This document shows, in pieces, positions 14,048 to 63,983 of a stretch of DNA of 64,000 bases. This DNA comes from Orbicella franksi. Taxonomy: Eukaryota. Below the pieces are notes generated by a model. It had not been told where the DNA came from and ran no database searches. It saw only the letters and a list, made by a program, of their open reading frames with translations. How positions within the stretch are numbered: the stretch's first letter is position 1; every line of letters begins with the position of its first letter. Made by a program: the position numbers and the translations under genes. The stretch lies in contig OZ116699.1 in NCBI GenBank assembly GCA_964199315.1, forward strand, positions 992,001 to 1,056,000, read 5' to 3'.

Positions 14048-15050
14048 TTCTGGGTGAGTGAAAATTACACTGAGCGAATTCATTTTGAGGGTCACTCACC
14101 CGAATGGCTAGTGCTGTAGAAATTTAATCCCCAACACTACAGTTCTGTGGGATTTACTAACTGTTTCAGTTTTCTTTGCTGCACTGGAGAGTGGGAATTG
14201 CTGCATGTCATATAAACTTTATCAAATTTGTAGGCTAGCTTATATCCCCACCAAAATTCAAACCTTAGTTTGCCATATGTTGCTTTAAATTATCTCTTAT
14301 GTTTACACTCCAATATTCAATTTCTACAATTCAACATTGCTCATTCACAATTTTATTTGCGTCTTCTGAGTTCAATGGTTCCTTAAATTTGTTTCATTTT
14401 TTAGATGGCAGCAGTCTAACGCGTGCTCGTATTCATCCGTGTTTCACGATCTCATTGGCTTTCCCTTTCATATGAAATTCCTTTTTTTCTCTTTTTTTTT
14501 TTGGTCACGCAAAACGTGTTCTTTTTCATAAAATAAAAGCCTTGCAGCAGGAGGCATTTTGGACGGCTCGCAAATGACATAACTTGGAGCGCGAACATTA
14601 TCTGTATGTTTGTTTTGTTTTGTTTGCTTATGGTATCAAATTCAAGGCAAATTCTTGTACAAATATTTTTTTAAAATCTGCGCCAGTTTATTTTCCTGTG
14701 TTAGCCATGTACGTCGTAATACATTCGATCACGTGTGACATTTGGGGAGATTATGTTTTGTTTGGTGTTAGCGACCACTAGAATATTATGGTACTTTACA
14801 ATTAAGAGACGAGGAGCTGGCGCGTCCCAAAGGGGGGACTACCAGATGAAAAAATTCATTCACTCAAGTTGAAAAATGATCACAAGCAATTATTTCTATT
14901 GTTTTTAAAATCTTTGAAAGTATCACTTTGTGTTTTGTTAGGATATTGTAATCTTTTAAAGGTTAACACGAGATGTTCTGGTACATTGTAAGAGTAATCC
15001 TCTTCACTTTGCTATGGAAGTTTCCAAGTGGTCTTATAGCTCTTATATAG

Positions 15051-16136
15051 TCAAGGATTGTTTAGGATAACAAACGCTCTCAGTTGAATCCTATCCCCGG
15101 GTGGGTTAGGATTCATAGTATCACCTTTACCACAAAATGGCTTCTTTAAGAAGATGCGGAAATCCTTCATCTGTACCACGTATATGATAAAATTAAGGGC
15201 GCCGTTTGAATAAAGCAGCCCACCGCTAAGACACCTTGTTATGAAATCTGTTTTAAAATCAAGAGAAGGCTTAGCTAACATTACATAGGTTGCATAATAA
15301 AGTAACGCGGAATATGGAATGATGAAAGCAAACGTCATAGCGATAAGAAGATACGTCCCACGGAGTTTAGTAGCTTTTAAGTTAGCCCTGATGGCGTTGT
15401 TCTTCTGAATATCTATACTTCTTTTTTGTCTTGACCATAAGGTCTTCGCAACGGAGATATTAATATAACTTAAAATAATACCAGGTATAAGATGCTGTAC
15501 TGAGGCATAACATACGGTTATTATTCTGAAAGTTAAATATCTGTTATCATATTTACAAATTATTGTAAAATGTGTATTGTTAAGATCGTATCTTATTCCA
15601 TTGAACGTTGCAGTTGGTCCTAAAACCACAACAAAACCTGCAAACCATGCAGTAAAAACTAGCTTGCGAACAGTAGAGACTCTGAAGGTGCGGGGCGCGG
15701 CACGAGTGGCTAAATACCTCTCCACGCTTATTACCATTAAATTATTCATTGTTATAGAAGGGAACAGTATGCCGAGAAATCGAACAATTTTACATTCCCA
15801 GCCATACTGAAACACATCGACCATAATCTGAATACAAACTAAAGGAAGTGCAATTATATTAGTAAGTATATCTGAAAGAGCTAAGCTCTTAATGTAAAAG
15901 TTGAAATTTCGTACAAATGGCGTGGACTGGATATGCGACACGCCGTTTTTCTTTAACGATATAAAGCAATACATTAGAATGTTGCCTACAAATCCTATTG
16001 CCCCTACAGACGCAAAAACTAAGACAAGAGCGAGTTTAGTGGCGAAGCCTGATGGTGTGAAGACGTAGACTTGACTTGTTACTTCTGTGGCGTTAAGGAG
16101 AGCAGACTGTTTATTGACAGAGAAGTTGGACATCAT
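15051..16136 (-). CDS. Class A (rhodopsin-like) orphan GPCR, probably peptide-receptor-like; 361 aa, single coding exon
   Basis: Seven hydrophobic segments. TM1 GN (GFVGN), TM2 LALSD, TM3 Cys (ECKIV) with ECL2 Cys (IICKY), SVERY for DRY, TM4 Trp (FTAW), TM5 Pro, TM7 NFIIY, and N-terminal N-glycosylation sequons. Confidence 0.95.
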   Translation of the reverse strand: MMSNFSVNKQSALLNATEVTSQVYVFTPSGFATKLALVLVFASVGAIGFVGNILMYCFISLKKNGVSHIQSTPFVRNFNFYIKSLALSDILTNIIALPLVCIQIMVDVFQYGWECKIVRFLGILFPSITMNNLMVISVERYLATRAAPRTFRVSTVRKLVFTAWFAGFVVVLGPTATFNGIRYDLNNTHFTIICKYDNRYLTFRIITVCYASVQHLIPGIILSYINISVAKTLWSRQKRSIDIQKNNAIRANLKATKLRGTYLLIAMTFAFIIPYSALLYYATYVMLAKPSLDFKTDFITRCLSGGLLYSNGALNFIIYVVQMKDFRIFLKKPFCGKGDTMNPNPPGDRIQLRAFVILNNP

Positions 16137-16433
16137 CTGCGATCCTTCCTAGTTGACCGTCTAAGGAGATAAACTATACCTGCTATAAAAAGCAACAAAA
16201 CAGCCTCAGCACCGCGACAACATCAATAACAAACCAACCAGTAGAACGGCATAACTAGTAAATAGTTACACTGCAAAAATAACACGGAAGTAAACTTAAT
16301 TAGTGATGAAGCCCTATTATCTGCTGTCTATGCTCACTTTAACCCGGTTTCGCTTTGTACTGATTGAATATTCAAAGATATACATTAAAATTATAAGTGC
16401 TAGTTTTGACAAACTTAAGAATGTGTCCATGAG

Positions 16434-16820
16434 AGAACCAGGCAGTTGGTGATGATACAGCTCAAATCATCGAGTTTGCTCAAACTTGGCACAAAAGTAG
16501 GGTTTGGTGAGTGAATTAGTAAAAGTAGTATAAGAAAGGCCTTGAGCTTTGCGCTTTGAGTCTGATCTACTTGTAGAACGTGATCCAGTACATGTCATTT
16601 TCACATGGCCTTTCTTGTTGTAGAAATACTAGACAAATGACAGCTAGTTAAATATGCATAAATAGGAGTCAAATGGCTATTTTTGCGGCGAGTACCCCCA
16701 ACTTGGAGGCAATAAAATATTTTGACCTACATTTGCCATAATCATTCACTCACCAAACGTAACATTTGTGCCAAGTTTGTGCGAAATCGGTGATTTGAGC
16801 CGTATCACCTGCCCGGTTCT
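16434..16820. mobile_element. MITE with ~85-bp imperfect terminal inverted repeats
   Basis: Left arm AGAACCAGGCAG..GATACAGCTCAAATCATCGAGTTTGCTCAAACTTGGCACAAA..TTTGGTGAGTGAAT matches the reverse complement of ~16740-16820. Confidence 0.85.
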
Positions 16821-17224
16821 GCCTTGTTTTCTCATAGGCTTTATCCTTCAAGTGCTGATATTTCCGAAAAGTACCCAATAAAATCCTACCGATGCCTATT
16901 TTTTGACCTTGTTTAGACCATGCAGATTATCGAAAGCTCATAGGAACGTCCAAACCAACATTCTATTCGACGACGGACGACGGGGCACGCATTTTAACAT
17001 TTCATCTGAGAAATGGGAAGAAAGATTTTGGGATAATAGACAGCACGTCAGGTCTTTCGTATTTTGGGAGTGTTGTTCTGTTTGCACTTTTTCCAGGCCA
17101 TTTGGCCACACAAAAACTACCAATCACAATCAAGAATTCTCGATCCGCCGAACGAGTATATAATACCAAAAAAATATGCCAGGTGCGGAGTGTTACCGAG
17201 CATTGGTCTCTACCACTCCATGTT

Positions 17225-17274
17225 ATCGGCAACTGATGAGATCCAGAAGGATCGAAACCGCGGTCTTGCCTGAT
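17225..17274 (+). ncRNA. Minimal type I hammerhead ribozyme
   Basis: Stem I GGCAA (17228-32) / TTGCC (17266-70), extended by ATC/GAT. Core CTGATGA (17233-39). Stem II GATCC-AGAA-GGATC. GAAA (17254-57). Stem III AC-CGCG-GT. Cleavage triplet GTC, with the predicted cut after C17265. Confidence 0.9.
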
Positions 17275-20074
17275 CTACAAGGCTACGAGCCTCCTAACAA
17301 AAGAGGGACTATTAACAGTCTCCAGAAAACCTGACAACATCGCAACTAAAAGCAATGACAACCACAACGTGGAGCTGGATGAACAATCATAGGAAGAACT
17401 CCTAAATTCAGAGCTTTTGCCTGAACAAAACCACACAACATCATAAGCAACACGCAAAACGGTCCACAGACTTGCGCGTGAACACCTACTTTTGCAGTTC
17501 CAGAACGAACAAACTGGAAGGACAAAAAGCTCGATGAAATTGATGCAAGAAGCATAAGAACGTCTCTTTAAGACAGACTCATAGCTTTCAACAAGGAAAG
17601 CGACAGCTATCTCTGGCGAAGCCAGACAAAGATAAATATGACACCCGTGATAACAAGCAGCATAACTTGCAACAGTCAATCAAACAGCCGGGCCCGGCGT
17701 AATAATACAAAATGCAAGTAACCAACATGCTCACGGAATATTTCAAACTTTGTCCCTCCAGAGCTAATATTTAGAGAGCTTAAAACATATCTTGCAATCA
17801 AATGAGCCAAAAAAAAAAAAAAAAAAATAGCACGTGGCCAAAAACAGAGGTGTCAAACTCAACAAATTACACGCCGATAACAGCGGAAACCACGCAGACT
17901 TATGACCTCTGACGGCTCTACTCTGGTGAAATGTCCTCCTAAAAACAGGATTATTGCTTAGCGAAATATTCAAAGATCACCCTATCGTACAATACAAAAG
18001 GGGCAGATCCTCAAAGATATACTAGTTCGAGCAAAACTCTCAAAGCGGCTATTACACGTGGATAGGAGTTGTGCAGGCCTGTCAATCCATTGTTATCACT
18101 GTCAAATTTCATTACAACAAGAGTAAATGCTGCTAGGAAAAGTCTAGTTCAACGAAGTAAAAATTCGTTTCTCCGACCGGCCCAGGCTAGGTCATCTCGT
18201 CTTATTCTTTTAGACACGCTCTGTAGCACTTTTCTCACTATACCAACTTATCATAAATACCTGATGTTCTCAAACGAACAGTGATGTTCAACACGCTTTT
18301 TGTCGGGTTTAGCATACAATATACTCAGTAGAAATCAATAGCGTTTTAAAGATTTTCTCGGGATAATCCGTTTATTGCTGTATATTTATTGCGTTTGTCA
18401 GTAACACACAGCGAACTAATCGAAATGTTTCGAGACCCAGTCGCCAGAAAGGATTGAAACATTGTGGCCTACTGCAATGTTCAAACTTTTAACTCATTGT
18501 AATTAACATTCGAATCAAATTTGAGTCAAACTGATTGGTGATTTGTGCAATAGCATTCTCTACCTGCTACTCTGGCGGACACGGCTAATGACTCTAACTT
18601 AGGCCTTTTCATAAGTATCACGTAAAATCGGTTAAATATCTTTCCGAAAATTCTCCAAAAAAAATGCTAAATATCACGAAACAATTTCTTAAAATCTCAA
18701 AAAACCCTCAAAATATTTCTTATCTTTGTTTCCTGAAAATGAGTAGAGGAAGACAATTCGAAGATTCAGGCGCCCTGATGTTACCAGGTTGTGCCACTTC
18801 CAAGCAATATATGAATACCAAAGAAAAACTCTTTCATTTAGGACAACCTTTGTTCACTTAAGTAATAACGATAAAATAAGATTTTTTCATGTTCGATCTC
18901 AGCAAAAAATCGACTCTTTCTGTAAATGCATTTGCGGTTCTCTTAAAAAATGCCAATCCAAAGCTCTTAACAGCAACGCTTGTTTTATTTCCATTGCAAA
19001 TATATAGCAGAGTTTCAAGAGAAAATTATAGTAATATTAAGCCAGATGGATTGTTTTCGTCGTGAAAATATCATCGATTAAACTAACGTAAGTTTATTCC
19101 TAGGAAGAGCAACAAATGAGTGTTTCTACCTTGGTATCGAAGAACTGTGTTTTCTACCACCGAATTGTTACGTTGTTCCCGTTGAATAGTGCATGCAAAC
19201 CTGAAAACTGTATCAGTTTGATAAATTTTACTGAGAATGATTGCAAAGGCAATATTTGCTTTATTCAATGTCTCAGCAAAACGGTTTAAGTTTTAAATTT
19301 TCAATATCAAAAATATCGCGGGGCGCTAAAGAATATTCTCACCACGAGCATGATTATTCTCAAGCACGGAATTTACCTTCTTTTCCTGTCGTGAAGTAGT
19401 TATGACGGGAACGCTTGTTACCCAGGCTGGATAACCTCATTGTTTGTTCCGTTCTCAGCATCATGTTGTCCAGTTTCCGATGGGTAGCATTTCGCACAGT
19501 TTCCTAACTAGCAGTTTTTTTTTTCCGAACCGGGGACGAAATTCCTTTTCAAGTGAAAAGGAGCTAAATACATCAATTGGCGAAAAGGTACGCTGATGCC
19601 TCATTAATATTGTCGTGGTCGAAGACTGGGCTCACTTTACGAGTAACTAACTTAGGAACTTTGCAGAAAATGAAATTGTACGACGGCCCCGAGGGTAAAG
19701 ATGTCACTTTTTCGGCATCATACACTGTATTAAAGAATAAAAGTGATACCTCGTAATACAGTAATATAGGATAAAGGAAATTGAAACTGAAGTTGTCGGA
19801 TGCTGGGCAACATACTGTGCAGTCATTGAAACAAGATATCGACCCCATTCAATAATTCGTGGAGAAAACTTTCATTAAGAAGATTTCATTAAGGAGATTA
19901 ATTTATTCACAATTGATAAACAACGGGAGGAATGTTTCAATGTCTTACACTTCCTTGTTTGAATATGTCAACATTTTAACCACGGATGCTCCACGTGATG
20001 TAAAGAGAAATGGAATATAGAAAACGTCTTCATTATGTCCATAAGTGTCTGATCACATATCATGGACTGCAGGC

Positions 20075-22377: not shown

Positions 22378-25008
22378 ATGTTCCGAATTTATCTATTGCT
22401 GTTGTCGTCATCCCTTCACTTTGAATCAATTTCAAGTAACCCAAAACGATTCTATAAACCAGGAAATGTGACGCTGGGTGTTATACTTCCACTTCATGTA
22501 AAGAACTCGGAGGATAACTGTGGTGAGTTCTACGCTTTTGGACTGGGCTATATCGAAGCCATAACTTTTGCTATCGAGCGAATTAACAACAACCCCAACC
22601 TGCTTCCAAACGTCACACTGGGATTTGACATTAGAGACTATTGTGATACACCTGTCCTGGCCATGAAAACGGCCAACGATTTAGTGAAGAGCAATTACCT
22701 TAACGAGCTCTTTGAAAGGCAAAAAGATGGTGGCACGTCGAAACGGGACTTTATATTACTCGTTCGGAATTTAACAGCGCCCATCTCTGCAGTGATTGGC
22801 ACGGAAGACTCAAGCAGCAGTACTCTGGTATCCAGTCTGCTACAAGTGGCTGGTATTCCAACAATAAGCCCGTTCGCTACCAGCGAGGAACTAAGTTCAC
22901 CATACTTTAATGCATTCTTCCGCACGATACCACCAGATGGGGAGCAGGCGAAGGCCATGGTGGACATTATAGAGCACTATCGATGGACCTACATTGCAGC
23001 CGTGGCCATCGATCATTCGTACGGTCGTTACGGTTTACGAGCGCTGGAGCGTGAAGCGTACGACCGCAAAACGTTTTGCATCGCGTTTTCGGAGTATTTC
23101 ACGCGCTCCGGCTACAAAGGAAAAATAAAAACGATCGTGACAAAGCTAAAAGCGGCCGAAAATATTAAAGTGATTGTTCTCTGGAGCAACTACGAACCCG
23201 CCAAACGATTTCTAAGAGAAGCAACTGCACAAGGTTTGAAAGGACGTACATTCCTCATCAGTGAAGCCATTGCCGTTATAAGTCCTGAAGTTCTGGAAGA
23301 AAATTCTGCAATTCTCAAGGGAGCGTTAGGAATAAGGCCACATCTATTCATTGACAAGCCATTTGAGGAACATCTCAAAGGAATCACAGTCAAGGACACC
23401 AGAGCAAGCGCTAATCCTTGGTGGGAAGAGTTCTGGGAGGAACACCTTAATTGCTCATGGCATCCTAGATCACGAGACGCGTGCAATGGCGGGGCAAAAG
23501 TAGACGAACGCGCCTTTTCCAAAATACATAATGCTTTCATTCCTTATCTAACCGATGCTACATTCGCTCTCGCGAACGCAATCGATTCCATGATTAAATG
23601 TAAAGAGCCTAAAGGTCTGTTAGAGGATGGAAAATGTCCAGACATAAATTCCATCACCAAACCCGAGGACACACTGCTGTACCTCAGAAATGTCAGATTT
23701 CATGGAGTCACAGGGAAGATACAATTTACCAAACATGGCGATCCACTCAGTTCATCTTACGACATTGTGAACTTTCAAAGACAGGGCCAACACTATGCAA
23801 CTGTCAAGGTGGGAACTTGGACCGGAGGGACAACCCATAAACTTACAATCGACAGTGAACTGATCAAATGGAGCGATCGCTCACTGGACACTGAATGCCC
23901 AGTGTCAACCTGCAGCTACAGCTGTCCACCCGGAACTAAGCAGACTGTAACTGTGTCTTGCTGTTGGGAGTGCATCAAATGTCCAGTCGGTAGCATTAGC
24001 ACGCAGTACAGCTCGCCAAACTGCTCTCAATGCCCTGAGCAGCATATGTCTAACAAAGATGGCACTGCATGCCTGCCTCTACCAGTCATCAACATTCAAT
24101 GGACAGACACTACTGCTGTGGTATATATAGTACTAACAGCAGTCGGCTTATTTGGGACAAGCGTGACTTTCGCTATTTTCTTCAAGAATCAAAACACTCC
24201 GATAGTCAAGGCTTCCAATCGCGAACTGAGCTTCCTCTTGTTGTTTACAATCGCGTTGTGTTTCGTGTTGACTTTGCTCCACTTGATCCAGCCCACGACA
24301 ATTCTATGCTGCATTGTGTATCCCTGGAGGTATTTCATTAACACGGCGTGCGTGTCGATCCTGTTTCTAAAGACAAACCGTCTGGTCCGAGCATTTCAAA
24401 CTGATATCATCCCCAACTGGTTCAAGAGATACGTCGTGGACCGAAGGCGTCAATTTCTAGTTGTCCTTCTGCTGAACATTGTTGAAGTCATCCTCTCGGC
24501 ATTATGGCTCGCGCTGGATCCTCCCTGCGTGCACCACGAGATTCGCCCACAGACGCATCTGTTCCACACCTGCTTGCCATTTACAACCACTGTGGGAAAA
24601 ATTCTTAGAACAGTCATGTTCTCATACTTCATATTCCTCTCCTTATTATCAGCTATCTACGCCTTCAAAGCAAGACGACTGCCCGAGAATTTCAACGAAG
24701 CAAGATACATCGGGCTGGCGATGTATGTTTTGCTCATCTCCTGGGTGTCATTTTACCCAGTGGATTCGTCCTTAGAGGGGTTTTACACCACCATAGTGGC
24801 ATGCGCCACAGCCCTGGTCACCGCTTATGGACTGCTCTTGTGTATTTTCGCTCCAAAACTCTTTGTTATCATCTTTCATCCGGAGCAGAATACAAACGAG
24901 TTTATGAAAGCTGAAATCGGACATTTTTCATCAAACATCTCCGCGACACCAAAGATTCACATGAGGGTCCGCCCTGTCACTGGCATTGAAAATGACTGTA
25001 GTATTTGA
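22378..25008 (+). CDS. Class C GPCR, calcium-sensing receptor/GPRC6A-like; 876 aa, single coding exon
   Basis: Signal peptide; Venus flytrap domain (LLPNVTLGFDIRDYC, FFRTIPPD, NPWWEEFW); nine-cysteine domain (CSYSCPPG..SCCWECIKC..CSQC..C); 7TM with KASNRELS, KARRLPENFNEARYI and FAPKL. Confidence 0.97.
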   Translation: MFRIYLLLLSSSLHFESISSNPKRFYKPGNVTLGVILPLHVKNSEDNCGEFYAFGLGYIEAITFAIERINNNPNLLPNVTLGFDIRDYCDTPVLAMKTANDLVKSNYLNELFERQKDGGTSKRDFILLVRNLTAPISAVIGTEDSSSSTLVSSLLQVAGIPTISPFATSEELSSPYFNAFFRTIPPDGEQAKAMVDIIEHYRWTYIAAVAIDHSYGRYGLRALEREAYDRKTFCIAFSEYFTRSGYKGKIKTIVTKLKAAENIKVIVLWSNYEPAKRFLREATAQGLKGRTFLISEAIAVISPEVLEENSAILKGALGIRPHLFIDKPFEEHLKGITVKDTRASANPWWEEFWEEHLNCSWHPRSRDACNGGAKVDERAFSKIHNAFIPYLTDATFALANAIDSMIKCKEPKGLLEDGKCPDINSITKPEDTLLYLRNVRFHGVTGKIQFTKHGDPLSSSYDIVNFQRQGQHYATVKVGTWTGGTTHKLTIDSELIKWSDRSLDTECPVSTCSYSCPPGTKQTVTVSCCWECIKCPVGSISTQYSSPNCSQCPEQHMSNKDGTACLPLPVINIQWTDTTAVVYIVLTAVGLFGTSVTFAIFFKNQNTPIVKASNRELSFLLLFTIALCFVLTLLHLIQPTTILCCIVYPWRYFINTACVSILFLKTNRLVRAFQTDIIPNWFKRYVVDRRRQFLVVLLLNIVEVILSALWLALDPPCVHHEIRPQTHLFHTCLPFTTTVGKILRTVMFSYFIFLSLLSAIYAFKARRLPENFNEARYIGLAMYVLLISWVSFYPVDSSLEGFYTTIVACATALVTAYGLLLCIFAPKLFVIIFHPEQNTNEFMKAEIGHFSSNISATPKIHMRVRPVTGIENDCSI

Positions 25009-63797: not shown

Positions 63798-63911
63798 GCC
63801 TTTCATAGAATACATTTTCATGGTATTGGCCATCCTCTCTGTGTTAGGATAGTTTTCTATATCCTCAATTTCCATATACGTTGTTGCGAAGAGAAAGCTT
63901 GAAAAGAATCA

Positions 63912-63983
63912 GGCTTGAACGGGATTCGAAACCATGACCTCTGCGATACCGGTGCAGTGCTCTACCAACTGAGCTATCAAGCC
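63912..63983 (-). repeat. tRNA-derived repeat head (pseudo-tRNA)
   Basis: Cloverleaf with a perfect acceptor stem (GGCTTGA/TCAAGCC) and D arm. The anticodon loop is CCGGTAT (no U33), and the anticodon and T stems have mismatches. Confidence 0.75.

Follow-up and report, generated by a model that had tools for sequence, protein, structure and literature searches.

The stretch of DNA analysed (hereafter the window) comprises 64,000 nt of the coral Orbicella franksi (assembly GCA_964199315.1, contig OZ116699.1, positions 992,001 to 1,056,000 of the forward strand). It carries two receptor ORFs, located and oriented as the first-pass annotation had reported, and between them a repeat that contains a type I hammerhead ribozyme motif. 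The motif is situated outside any long ORF, also as annotated. The features are listed below, with positions numbered within the window.

15051-16136, minus strand: ORF of a class A (rhodopsin-type) 7TM receptor (7tm_1)
17113-18102, plus strand: 5′-truncated copy of a 1296-bp non-coding Penelope-derived repeat, unit positions 318-1296 (blastn, 990 bp)
17120-17124, plus strand: CCAAT, read from the sequence; putative promoter-like pair with TATATAAT at 17157-17164
17157-17164, plus strand: TATATAAT, putative promoter-like element about 60 nt upstream of the ribozyme
17225-17274, plus strand: type I hammerhead ribozyme motif (Rfam RF02275 match, identity to the family consensus, covariation)
17228-17232 and 17266-17270, plus strand: stem I, GGCAA/UUGCC
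17233-17239, plus strand: hammerhead core CUGAUGA, read from the sequence
17240-17244 and 17249-17253, plus strand: stem II, GAUCC/GGAUC, 5 bp, with loop AGAA
17254-17256, plus strand: hammerhead core GAA (the GAAA at 17254-17257 includes the first nt of stem III), read from the sequence
17257-17264, plus strand: stem III octamer ACCGCGGU, predicted to pair between two molecules as an 8-bp helix (double hammerhead)
17263-17265, plus strand: cleavable triplet GUC, read from the sequence
17265/17266, plus strand: predicted cleavage site, between C17265 (the cleavage-site C) and U17266
17802-17828, plus strand: A-run in the element, longer than in the family consensus (compared with the L009 unit)
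17953-18102, plus strand: 3′ terminal segment, the C-terminal end of an RT ORF (..KDILVRAKL in frame) plus about 60 nt, matching an RT-coding relative
22378-25008, plus strand: ORF of a class C receptor (ANF_receptor, NCD3G, 7tm_3)
63911-63983, minus strand: tRNA gene (Rfam RF00005, 55.9 bits)

The nucleotides of a type I hammerhead core (CUGANGA, GAAA and a cleavable GUH) are all present in 17225-17274, and CUGAUGA, GAAA and GUC are found where the first-pass annotation had read them. Core position 7 is U, A or C across the relatives described below, as the hammerhead core allows. Both stems I and II had been called perfect. This is correct for the 5 bp of stem II, but stem I has a one-nt bulge and consists of 5+3 bp, with AUC/GAU pairs added past a bulged U. 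The octamer of stem III is its own reverse complement, as described earlier.

A search with hammerhead models had been proposed as a check, and it recovers the motif. The Rfam model Hammerhead_HH9 (RF02275) matches 17219-17284 with 33.4 bits and an E-value of 2.4e-6 in an E-value scan of 1.1 kb (16700-17800), though the score is below the HH9 gathering score of 52 bits. At gathering thresholds no hammerhead is listed for the whole window, the tRNA gene being the sole match, and none of 42 HH9 matches in the genome is over the cut-off. HH9 is the best-scoring model; like the window motif it has the core, a stem II of 4-5 bp whose loop is A-rich, and a stem III framed by GAAAC..GGUC. However, the outer stem I of the model is missing from the window motif, the stem III loop is shorter, and HH9 was defined on conserved intronic amniote copies, not transposon copies. 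For RF02275, about 30,000 candidates in the genome were counted at a rough first look. Four HH9-like matches on one strand, at exact 526-bp steps (G000:C1:44084196-44085843), represent a separate retrozyme-like tandem array.

The motif had been taken for a single copy in heavily decayed flanks (about 16900-17700). It is single in the window only. A comparison by blastn of window positions 15000-20000 with 19 other loci shows sharp common boundaries at 17113 and 18099-18103, with 95-99% identity between them. The repeat thus delimited, 17113-18102, has a 3′ end ambiguous by 1-2 nt, at 18101/18102, and the hammerhead starts 112 nt inside it. The window copy is 96.7% identical to the family consensus (38 copies), i.e., it diverges by about 3.3%, and all 50 nt of its hammerhead are those of the consensus. 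Stops in all frames of the flanks come from the non-coding nature of the family and not from the age of the copy. With a divergence of about 3.3%, an unmutated stretch of 50 nt is expected in about one fifth of copies, so the intact ribozyme does not require retention by selection at this locus. Thus, of the two origins that had been offered, a recent one is upheld and retention by selection is not; the copy is intact because the insertion is young, and not through service to the locus.

The window copy is solitary and lacks the first 317 nt of the unit, and being solitary it would release no unit by double cleavage. No target-site duplication was found, the longest word common to the 40-nt flanks being 4 nt. 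The order and spacing of CCAAT, TATA and hammerhead are repeated in the RT-coding relatives L029 and L043. At the other end of the element, unit positions 1147-1295 are 81-83% identical to the 3′ end of an RT-coding relative, and the corresponding segment of the window copy, 17953-18102, is probably the part recognised for reverse transcription.

The 33-nt ribozyme sequence is found in 64 copies in the genome, 39 of them exact and 25 with 1-3 mismatches; a reversed control pattern has no genome matches. A 201-bp probe around the motif gave 40 scored copies of 96-99% identity, out of 221 first-look candidates, on most of the large contigs (the assembly is 497 Mb). With a second probe, taken from the opposite end of the element, 40 further copies were scored out of 264 first-look candidates. 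Hundreds of near-identical copies with equally conserved flanks, it had been said in advance, would make the hammerhead an ordinary young Penelope tail. Many near-identical copies with equally conserved flanks are essentially what the genome contains. The repeat is indeed young, but the host is a non-autonomous derivative, and the ribozyme is in its 5′ part and not in a 3′ tail.

The family unit is 1296 bp, non-coding, with stops in all frames, a protein reading being limited to the final ~140 nt, which end in ..KDILVRAKL. A tandem array at G000:C12:25312030-25315949 consists of five units, with the ribozyme at steps of 1296, 1296 and 1295 bp, and L030 has four successive 1296-bp units. Insertions begin at unit positions 1, 143, 156, 229, 256, 294 and 318, and the 3′ end is common to all; other copies reach 170-321 bp further 5′ than the window copy. 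Head-to-head inverted pairs are common (e.g., L008, L013, L029), and arrays have a period of 1296 or, in the RT-coding relatives, of 3228. The published signature of Penelope-like elements (PLEs) combines 5′ truncation at differing points with a constant 3′ end, partial tandems and neighbouring inverted copies (PMC8557442, PMC4209133), and all of these are displayed by the family. In addition, the family consists of non-coding tandem repeats with a type I hammerhead per unit, as retrozymes do, whereas the solitary window copy does not have this arrangement.

Within the family the mean minor-allele fraction is 0.58% for the hammerhead, 2.3% for the sequence immediately flanking it and 1.6% for the remainder of the unit (38 copies, some of them picked by the ribozyme-containing probe, for which the flanks from the same probe are a partial control). 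Only 4.9% of 50-nt windows are as conserved as the hammerhead. Unit positions 1101-1200, near the 3′ end, are also quiet, at 0.56%. These values are suggestive of constraint on the hammerhead within the family. A sub-lineage has GUA in place of GUC (G000:C2:9472870, C4:12831209, C6:13798105, C6:17557787, C8:17130247, C9:21416804, C14:10446010); GUA also belongs to the cleavable GUH triplets, and the substitution seems to be diagnostic of a subfamily rather than a product of random decay. A sister hammerhead family, found at G000:C2:25068631-25071661 and at some 100 further places, shares stem I with this one and has the palindrome ACCAUGGU; its stem II loop (ACAUGGA) is longer, and some of its copies form arrays with a 1495-bp period.

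Two loci picked for their slightly divergent ribozymes, L024 and L029, match the unit only at 229-519 (76-77% identity) and at 1147-1295 (81-83%), and in these loci the two segments are 2.4 kb apart. In L029, on the minus strand, the tail of a previous copy is followed by the unit start, CCAAT and TATA, the hammerhead (with A at core position 7) and, 11 nt after it, an ATG. After the ATG come a basic, coiled-coil-like region of 349 aa, one stop, and an RT of 505 aa that ends in ..SYKRGRSLKDILVRAKL; the common 3′ terminus is about 60 nt past the RT end. The RT has an RVT_1 match of 2.3e-7, and a second RVT_1 match among the RT-coding relatives has 1.2e-9. The genome holds 3277 first-look candidates for the L029 RT. 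Seven other loci, from lineages with protein identities of 66-74%, have open frames of 684-900 aa that stop at the same point. The ORFs of 842-900 aa in L031, L033, L038, L041, L042, L043 and L044 all stop right after ..LKDILV(R/K)AKL, at the RT-EN linker. The coding relatives are about 3.2 kb long. In L043, tandem units of 3228 bp carry identical 900-aa ORFs, each with a hammerhead 25 nt before the ATG:

L043:4747-7446, minus strand: RT ORF of L043, with tandem copies at G000:C5:758518-769718

The distance from the hammerhead end to the ATG or open frame is 11-25 nt in L029, L036, L038, L041 and L043. Thus in the relatives, as in PLEs, a hammerhead is found in a repeated non-coding region beside an ORF. 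The L043 ORF also aligns with L056, a canonical 796-aa ORF of the same genome with RT, CxxC linker and GIY-YIG (36% identity over 612 aa, E 8e-120), and the alignment ends at the C-terminus of the L043 ORF. The RT ORFs of the relatives display an ADKG motif and the ..LKDILVRAKL linker. On the RVT_1 match, the L056 alignment, this motif and the linker, the RT of the autonomous relative is of the PLE type. When the 899-aa RT ORF was compared with PDB sequences, nothing matched at E up to 1.

Canonical PLE ORFs run on past the RT into a CxxC linker and GIY-YIG. No GIY-YIG was found by Pfam in the ORFs of the RT-coding relatives, which therefore differ from canonical EN+ PLEs. The 470-nt spacer of the coding relatives has no ORF, and tblastn of the GIY-YIG domain against it gave a best E of 5.9. 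The tandem junction reads on in frame past the linker, which had raised the idea that the first 430 nt of the unit are a decayed GIY-YIG region. This was rejected: the junctions of L029, of L043 and of the non-autonomous consensus were searched by tblastn with the linker plus EN of L056, and the best E was again 5.9. Among four RT lineages pN is 0.28-0.30 and pS 0.72-0.79, with saturation at synonymous sites and a dN/dS of at most about 0.15; the endonuclease-less ORF is therefore old and under selection. Copies of the RT clade are at internal chromosome positions. From these sequences, the host lineage is read as Penelope-like in its RT, its hammerhead and its insertion habits, and as encoding no endonuclease, and the 1296-bp family is read as a non-autonomous derivative that keeps the promoter-like/hammerhead region and the 3′ end.

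The canonical EN+ PLEs of this genome have a hammerhead-like motif of their own about 170 nt downstream of the ORF (L056:2478-2513, minus strand; L047:1967-2002, plus strand), with an 8-bp stem II, a GUA triplet and a non-palindromic stem III. Separately, L048-L054 (e.g., G000:C3:3545504-3548773) have at positions 1351-1809 an open frame of 153 aa with a GIY-YIG fragment. The frame is nearly identical at many loci and has minisatellite-like repeats on both sides, one of which translates as STEYNEV repeats. From its sequence this appears to be a composite repeat that captured a piece of a PLE endonuclease.

The hammerheads of eight lineages were aligned over 14 pairs (alignment A1) and compared with shuffled and slid controls. 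Pairing is maintained in 99.1% of cells, and changes on both sides are found in 6 of the 14 pairs, in stems I, II and III. Covariation of this extent was not reached in any of 500 shuffles, and slid controls give at most 2. Stem II, for example, is AUCC/GGAU, UUCC/GGAA, AAUC/GAUU or AUUC/GAAU in different lineages. The alignment thus has the three helices of a type I hammerhead, with helix I open, helices II and III closed, and covariation across the eight lineages. In stem III three palindromic octamers are present in the clade: ACCGCGGU, ACUGCAGU (L038, L043) and ACCAUGGU (the large sister family). When the four central bases were left free, a palindromic octamer was found in 89 of the first 100 matches listed, whereas 1/16 is expected by chance. 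The less common ACCGUGGU form corresponds to the G-U intermediate that CpG decay should produce. The joint change of the four central bases is predicted by an intermolecular 8-bp helix, whereas the loop bases of a monomer would vary freely.

Hammerheads in the pLTRs of PLEs work as dimers with weak in vitro activity (PMC4209133), and those of amphibian retrozymes act as dimers and cleave poorly alone (PMC7229834). Energy calculations for the window hammerhead point the same way. In the monomer the active fold has -10.2 kcal/mol and an inactive alternative -14.8, and stem III contributes +0.3 kcal/mol; thus the lone window hammerhead is predicted to misfold. The dimer has an MFE of -38.3 kcal/mol, compared with -29.6 for two monomers, and uses the octamer duplex. 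It should be noted that the dimer energy is a pseudoknot-free MFE with swapped stem I strands, as the textbook double hammerhead, in which stem I is intramolecular and stem III intermolecular, is a pseudoknot in concatenated notation. The palindrome variants and the covariation, both read from sequence, support the double-hammerhead model, and the dimer action that had been suggested for this motif is borne out to that extent.

Twelve RNA runs, which carry the label coral or coral metagenome and come from five or more studies, contain more than half of the element's sampled words. RNA from two raw-read poly(A) runs and two contig sets was mapped on window positions 16500-18700. Depth is confined to 17092-18127, and in the four data sets the unique flanks, 16944-17091 and 18128-18700, have zero depth. 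The raw reads number 43 of 12.9 million records in X24 and 5 of 10.1 million in X22, and both strands are represented. Some read ends are loose at 17113, running into the 5′ part that is absent from the window copy. Neither a pile of read ends at 17265/17266 or elsewhere in the element nor RNA joints in the element were reported, at a raw depth of only about 3-6; an active PLE hammerhead site likewise shows no RNA-seq ends (Frangieh et al., PMC11167929). Two contigs, X1#2 (17113-17317) and X3#9 (17114-17282), span the predicted cut uncut, although contaminating DNA could be their source. Reads seem to be cut at the A-run 17802-17828. Thus the family is present at a low level in RNA libraries, and the window locus is without visible transcription.

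Four readings of the window hammerhead can be weighed against these data. That it resembles the hammerhead consensus by chance and has no biological meaning would agree with an Rfam score under the curated gathering threshold, but the probability of this is negligible. The HH9 E-value is 2.4e-6, a pattern of core plus stem III has its one match in the window and none in 100 shuffles, and the motif is kept with compensatory changes in eight diverged element lineages, at a constant place before the RT ORF. On its sequence, therefore, the motif is regarded as genuine. The first-pass annotation had also proposed that it could cut a receptor transcript. An intact ribozyme, in sense to the class C ORF and separated by 1.1 kb from the class A ORF start, invites the idea of an exapted regulatory element that cuts an upstream or 5′-UTR transcript of the class C gene or acts on the class A gene. 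This proposal is not supported, and exaptation is very improbable. The ribozyme is one of at least 64 near-identical copies and is within a young repeat, its intactness is what the age of the copy predicts, and the flanks show no read depth. The class A gene is on the opposite strand, so its RNA would carry the inactive antisense of the hammerhead, and the class C ORF starts 5.1 kb downstream. In addition, the lone hammerhead is predicted to misfold.

A role within the family leaves more room for the window copy, which might be a live source, transcribed from its own CCAAT/TATA, self-processed and feeding the family RNA pool. Despite its truncation at 17113 the copy still has the promoter-like pair and the ribozyme, and 3 of the 43 X24 reads are at least 99% like the window copy. 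However the other 40 are only 95-99% alike and so derive from other copies, and the loose ends at 17113 continue into sequence that the window copy does not have. No depth is seen past 18127, though there is no obvious terminator at the element end, and the first 317 nt of the unit are missing. A live source is therefore unlikely, if somewhat less so than exaptation. The window hammerhead is, very probably, a passenger part of a mobile element, namely a young solitary 5′-truncated insertion of a 1296-bp non-coding Penelope-derived unit. The hammerhead is probably functional for the element lineage, not for the window locus. Against the passenger reading stands the fact that the coding relatives have no GIY-YIG, so that one defining feature of PLEs is missing. 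However endonuclease-less clades of PLEs are known, and the missing domain does not exclude membership of the superfamily. The annotation of the motif as a hammerhead of the Penelope/retrozyme kind is thus upheld by the family anatomy and the RT-coding relatives.

From this anatomy, together with published work on PLE and retrozyme hammerheads, the following mechanism can be proposed. The 1296-bp element has kept only two pieces of a ~3.2-kb Penelope-like lineage, the 5′ region with the CCAAT/TATA promoter-like pair and the hammerhead, and the last 150 nt with the RT ORF end and the 3′ terminus. Transcripts that start from the CCAAT/TATA of an upstream unit, or that arise by read-through of arrays, would hold at least two hammerheads. 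In vivo the palindromic stem III octamers may then pair intermolecularly to form a double hammerhead, and each RNA would be cut after the equivalent of C17265, giving unit-length RNA with 5′-OH and 2′,3′-cyclic phosphate ends. In coding elements the same cut would trim the RNA just ahead of the ORF. The unit-length RNA, in arrays possibly a circle, would serve as template, and a PLE RT acting in trans would copy it from the common 3′ end at a nicked target. Copying of this kind would leave a shared 3′ end, varied 5′ truncations and inverted partners. The non-coding 1296-bp unit would use the same two signals in trans. For the Poseidon PLE, reverse transcription begins internally and the hammerhead is protein-assisted (PMC11167929).

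Hammerheads in the pLTRs of PLEs were described in 2014 (Cervera & de la Pena, PMC4209133). The family described here is similar in that its hammerhead is of type I, with a short helix III and a small palindromic loop read as dimer-forming, and is placed ahead of the RT ORF in non-coding sequence that is repeated; numerous solitary copies of truncated elements and opposite-strand pairs a few hundred bp apart are also shared. In the terms of that paper the window motif is 'canonical metazoan' (2-bp helix III, 4-nt loop, 5-bp helix II) and differs from the strict 'min-HHR', in which helix III is absent and helix II measures 7-8 bp. The coding relatives differ from the PLE hosts of that study by having no GIY-YIG domain.

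Over 6000 type I hammerheads in 16 families are known from Acropora millepora (Cervera & de la Pena 2020, PMC7229834), and retrozymes have been argued to be non-autonomous PLE derivatives (Li, Clavereau & Pollet 2026 preprint, bioRxiv 10.64898/2026.07.22.740005). Similar to the animal non-LTR retrozymes of these two papers, the 1296-bp family is non-coding and non-autonomous, has a type I hammerhead, forms tandem arrays, and has sequence in common with PLE termini; such retrozymes are known from a stony coral, Acropora millepora. However they are about 170-450 bp long and the unit described here is 3-8 times longer and keeps a recognisable RT ORF end.

The coding relatives may be compared with other PLEs. 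Poseidon PAc of Anolis carolinensis (Frangieh et al. 2024, PMC11167929) also has a hammerhead at the pLTR-ORF junction and tandem loci, and the 3′ ends of its insertions are at a defined internal site of a multimeric RNA. Its ORF starts inside the hammerhead, whereas in the coral the ribozyme ends 11-25 nt before the ATG, and its protein has the GIY-YIG endonuclease that the coral relatives do not encode. Athena and Coprina (summarised in Craig et al. 2021, PMC8557442) are RT-only PLE relatives with hammerhead motifs, as the coral clade is. They are telomeric and carry reverse-complement telomeric repeats, whereas the copies of the coral clade are at internal chromosome positions and no telomeric repeats were seen at their 3′ end.

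Hammerheads with a palindromic stem III were already known in PLEs and retrozymes in 2014-2020, and the window copy adds one more family; little is at stake for the window hammerhead as given. A few modest points reach beyond it. We raise tentatively, as a reading that is possible but more doubtful than not, that the coding relatives are an undescribed PLE lineage that lost GIY-YIG long ago and persists under purifying selection (pN ~0.29, pS ~0.75), represented by over 3000 RT candidates within chromosomes and by tandem copies that are nearly identical, and that it spawned a 1.3-kb 'giant retrozyme' parasite. If so, an endonuclease-less PLE would thrive off telomeres, either with a nuclease borrowed from EN+ PLEs or with breaks as entry sites, and dimeric hammerheads would be the processing signal in common. 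The endonuclease-less host lineage also raises the question of the integration route. The double-hammerhead model had rested mostly on in vitro constructs, and the three stem III palindromes, together with covariation in stems I and II, give it clean comparative support. The direct tie between a 1.3-kb non-coding unit and RT-only PLEs is a concrete case for retrozymes as non-autonomous derivatives of PLEs.
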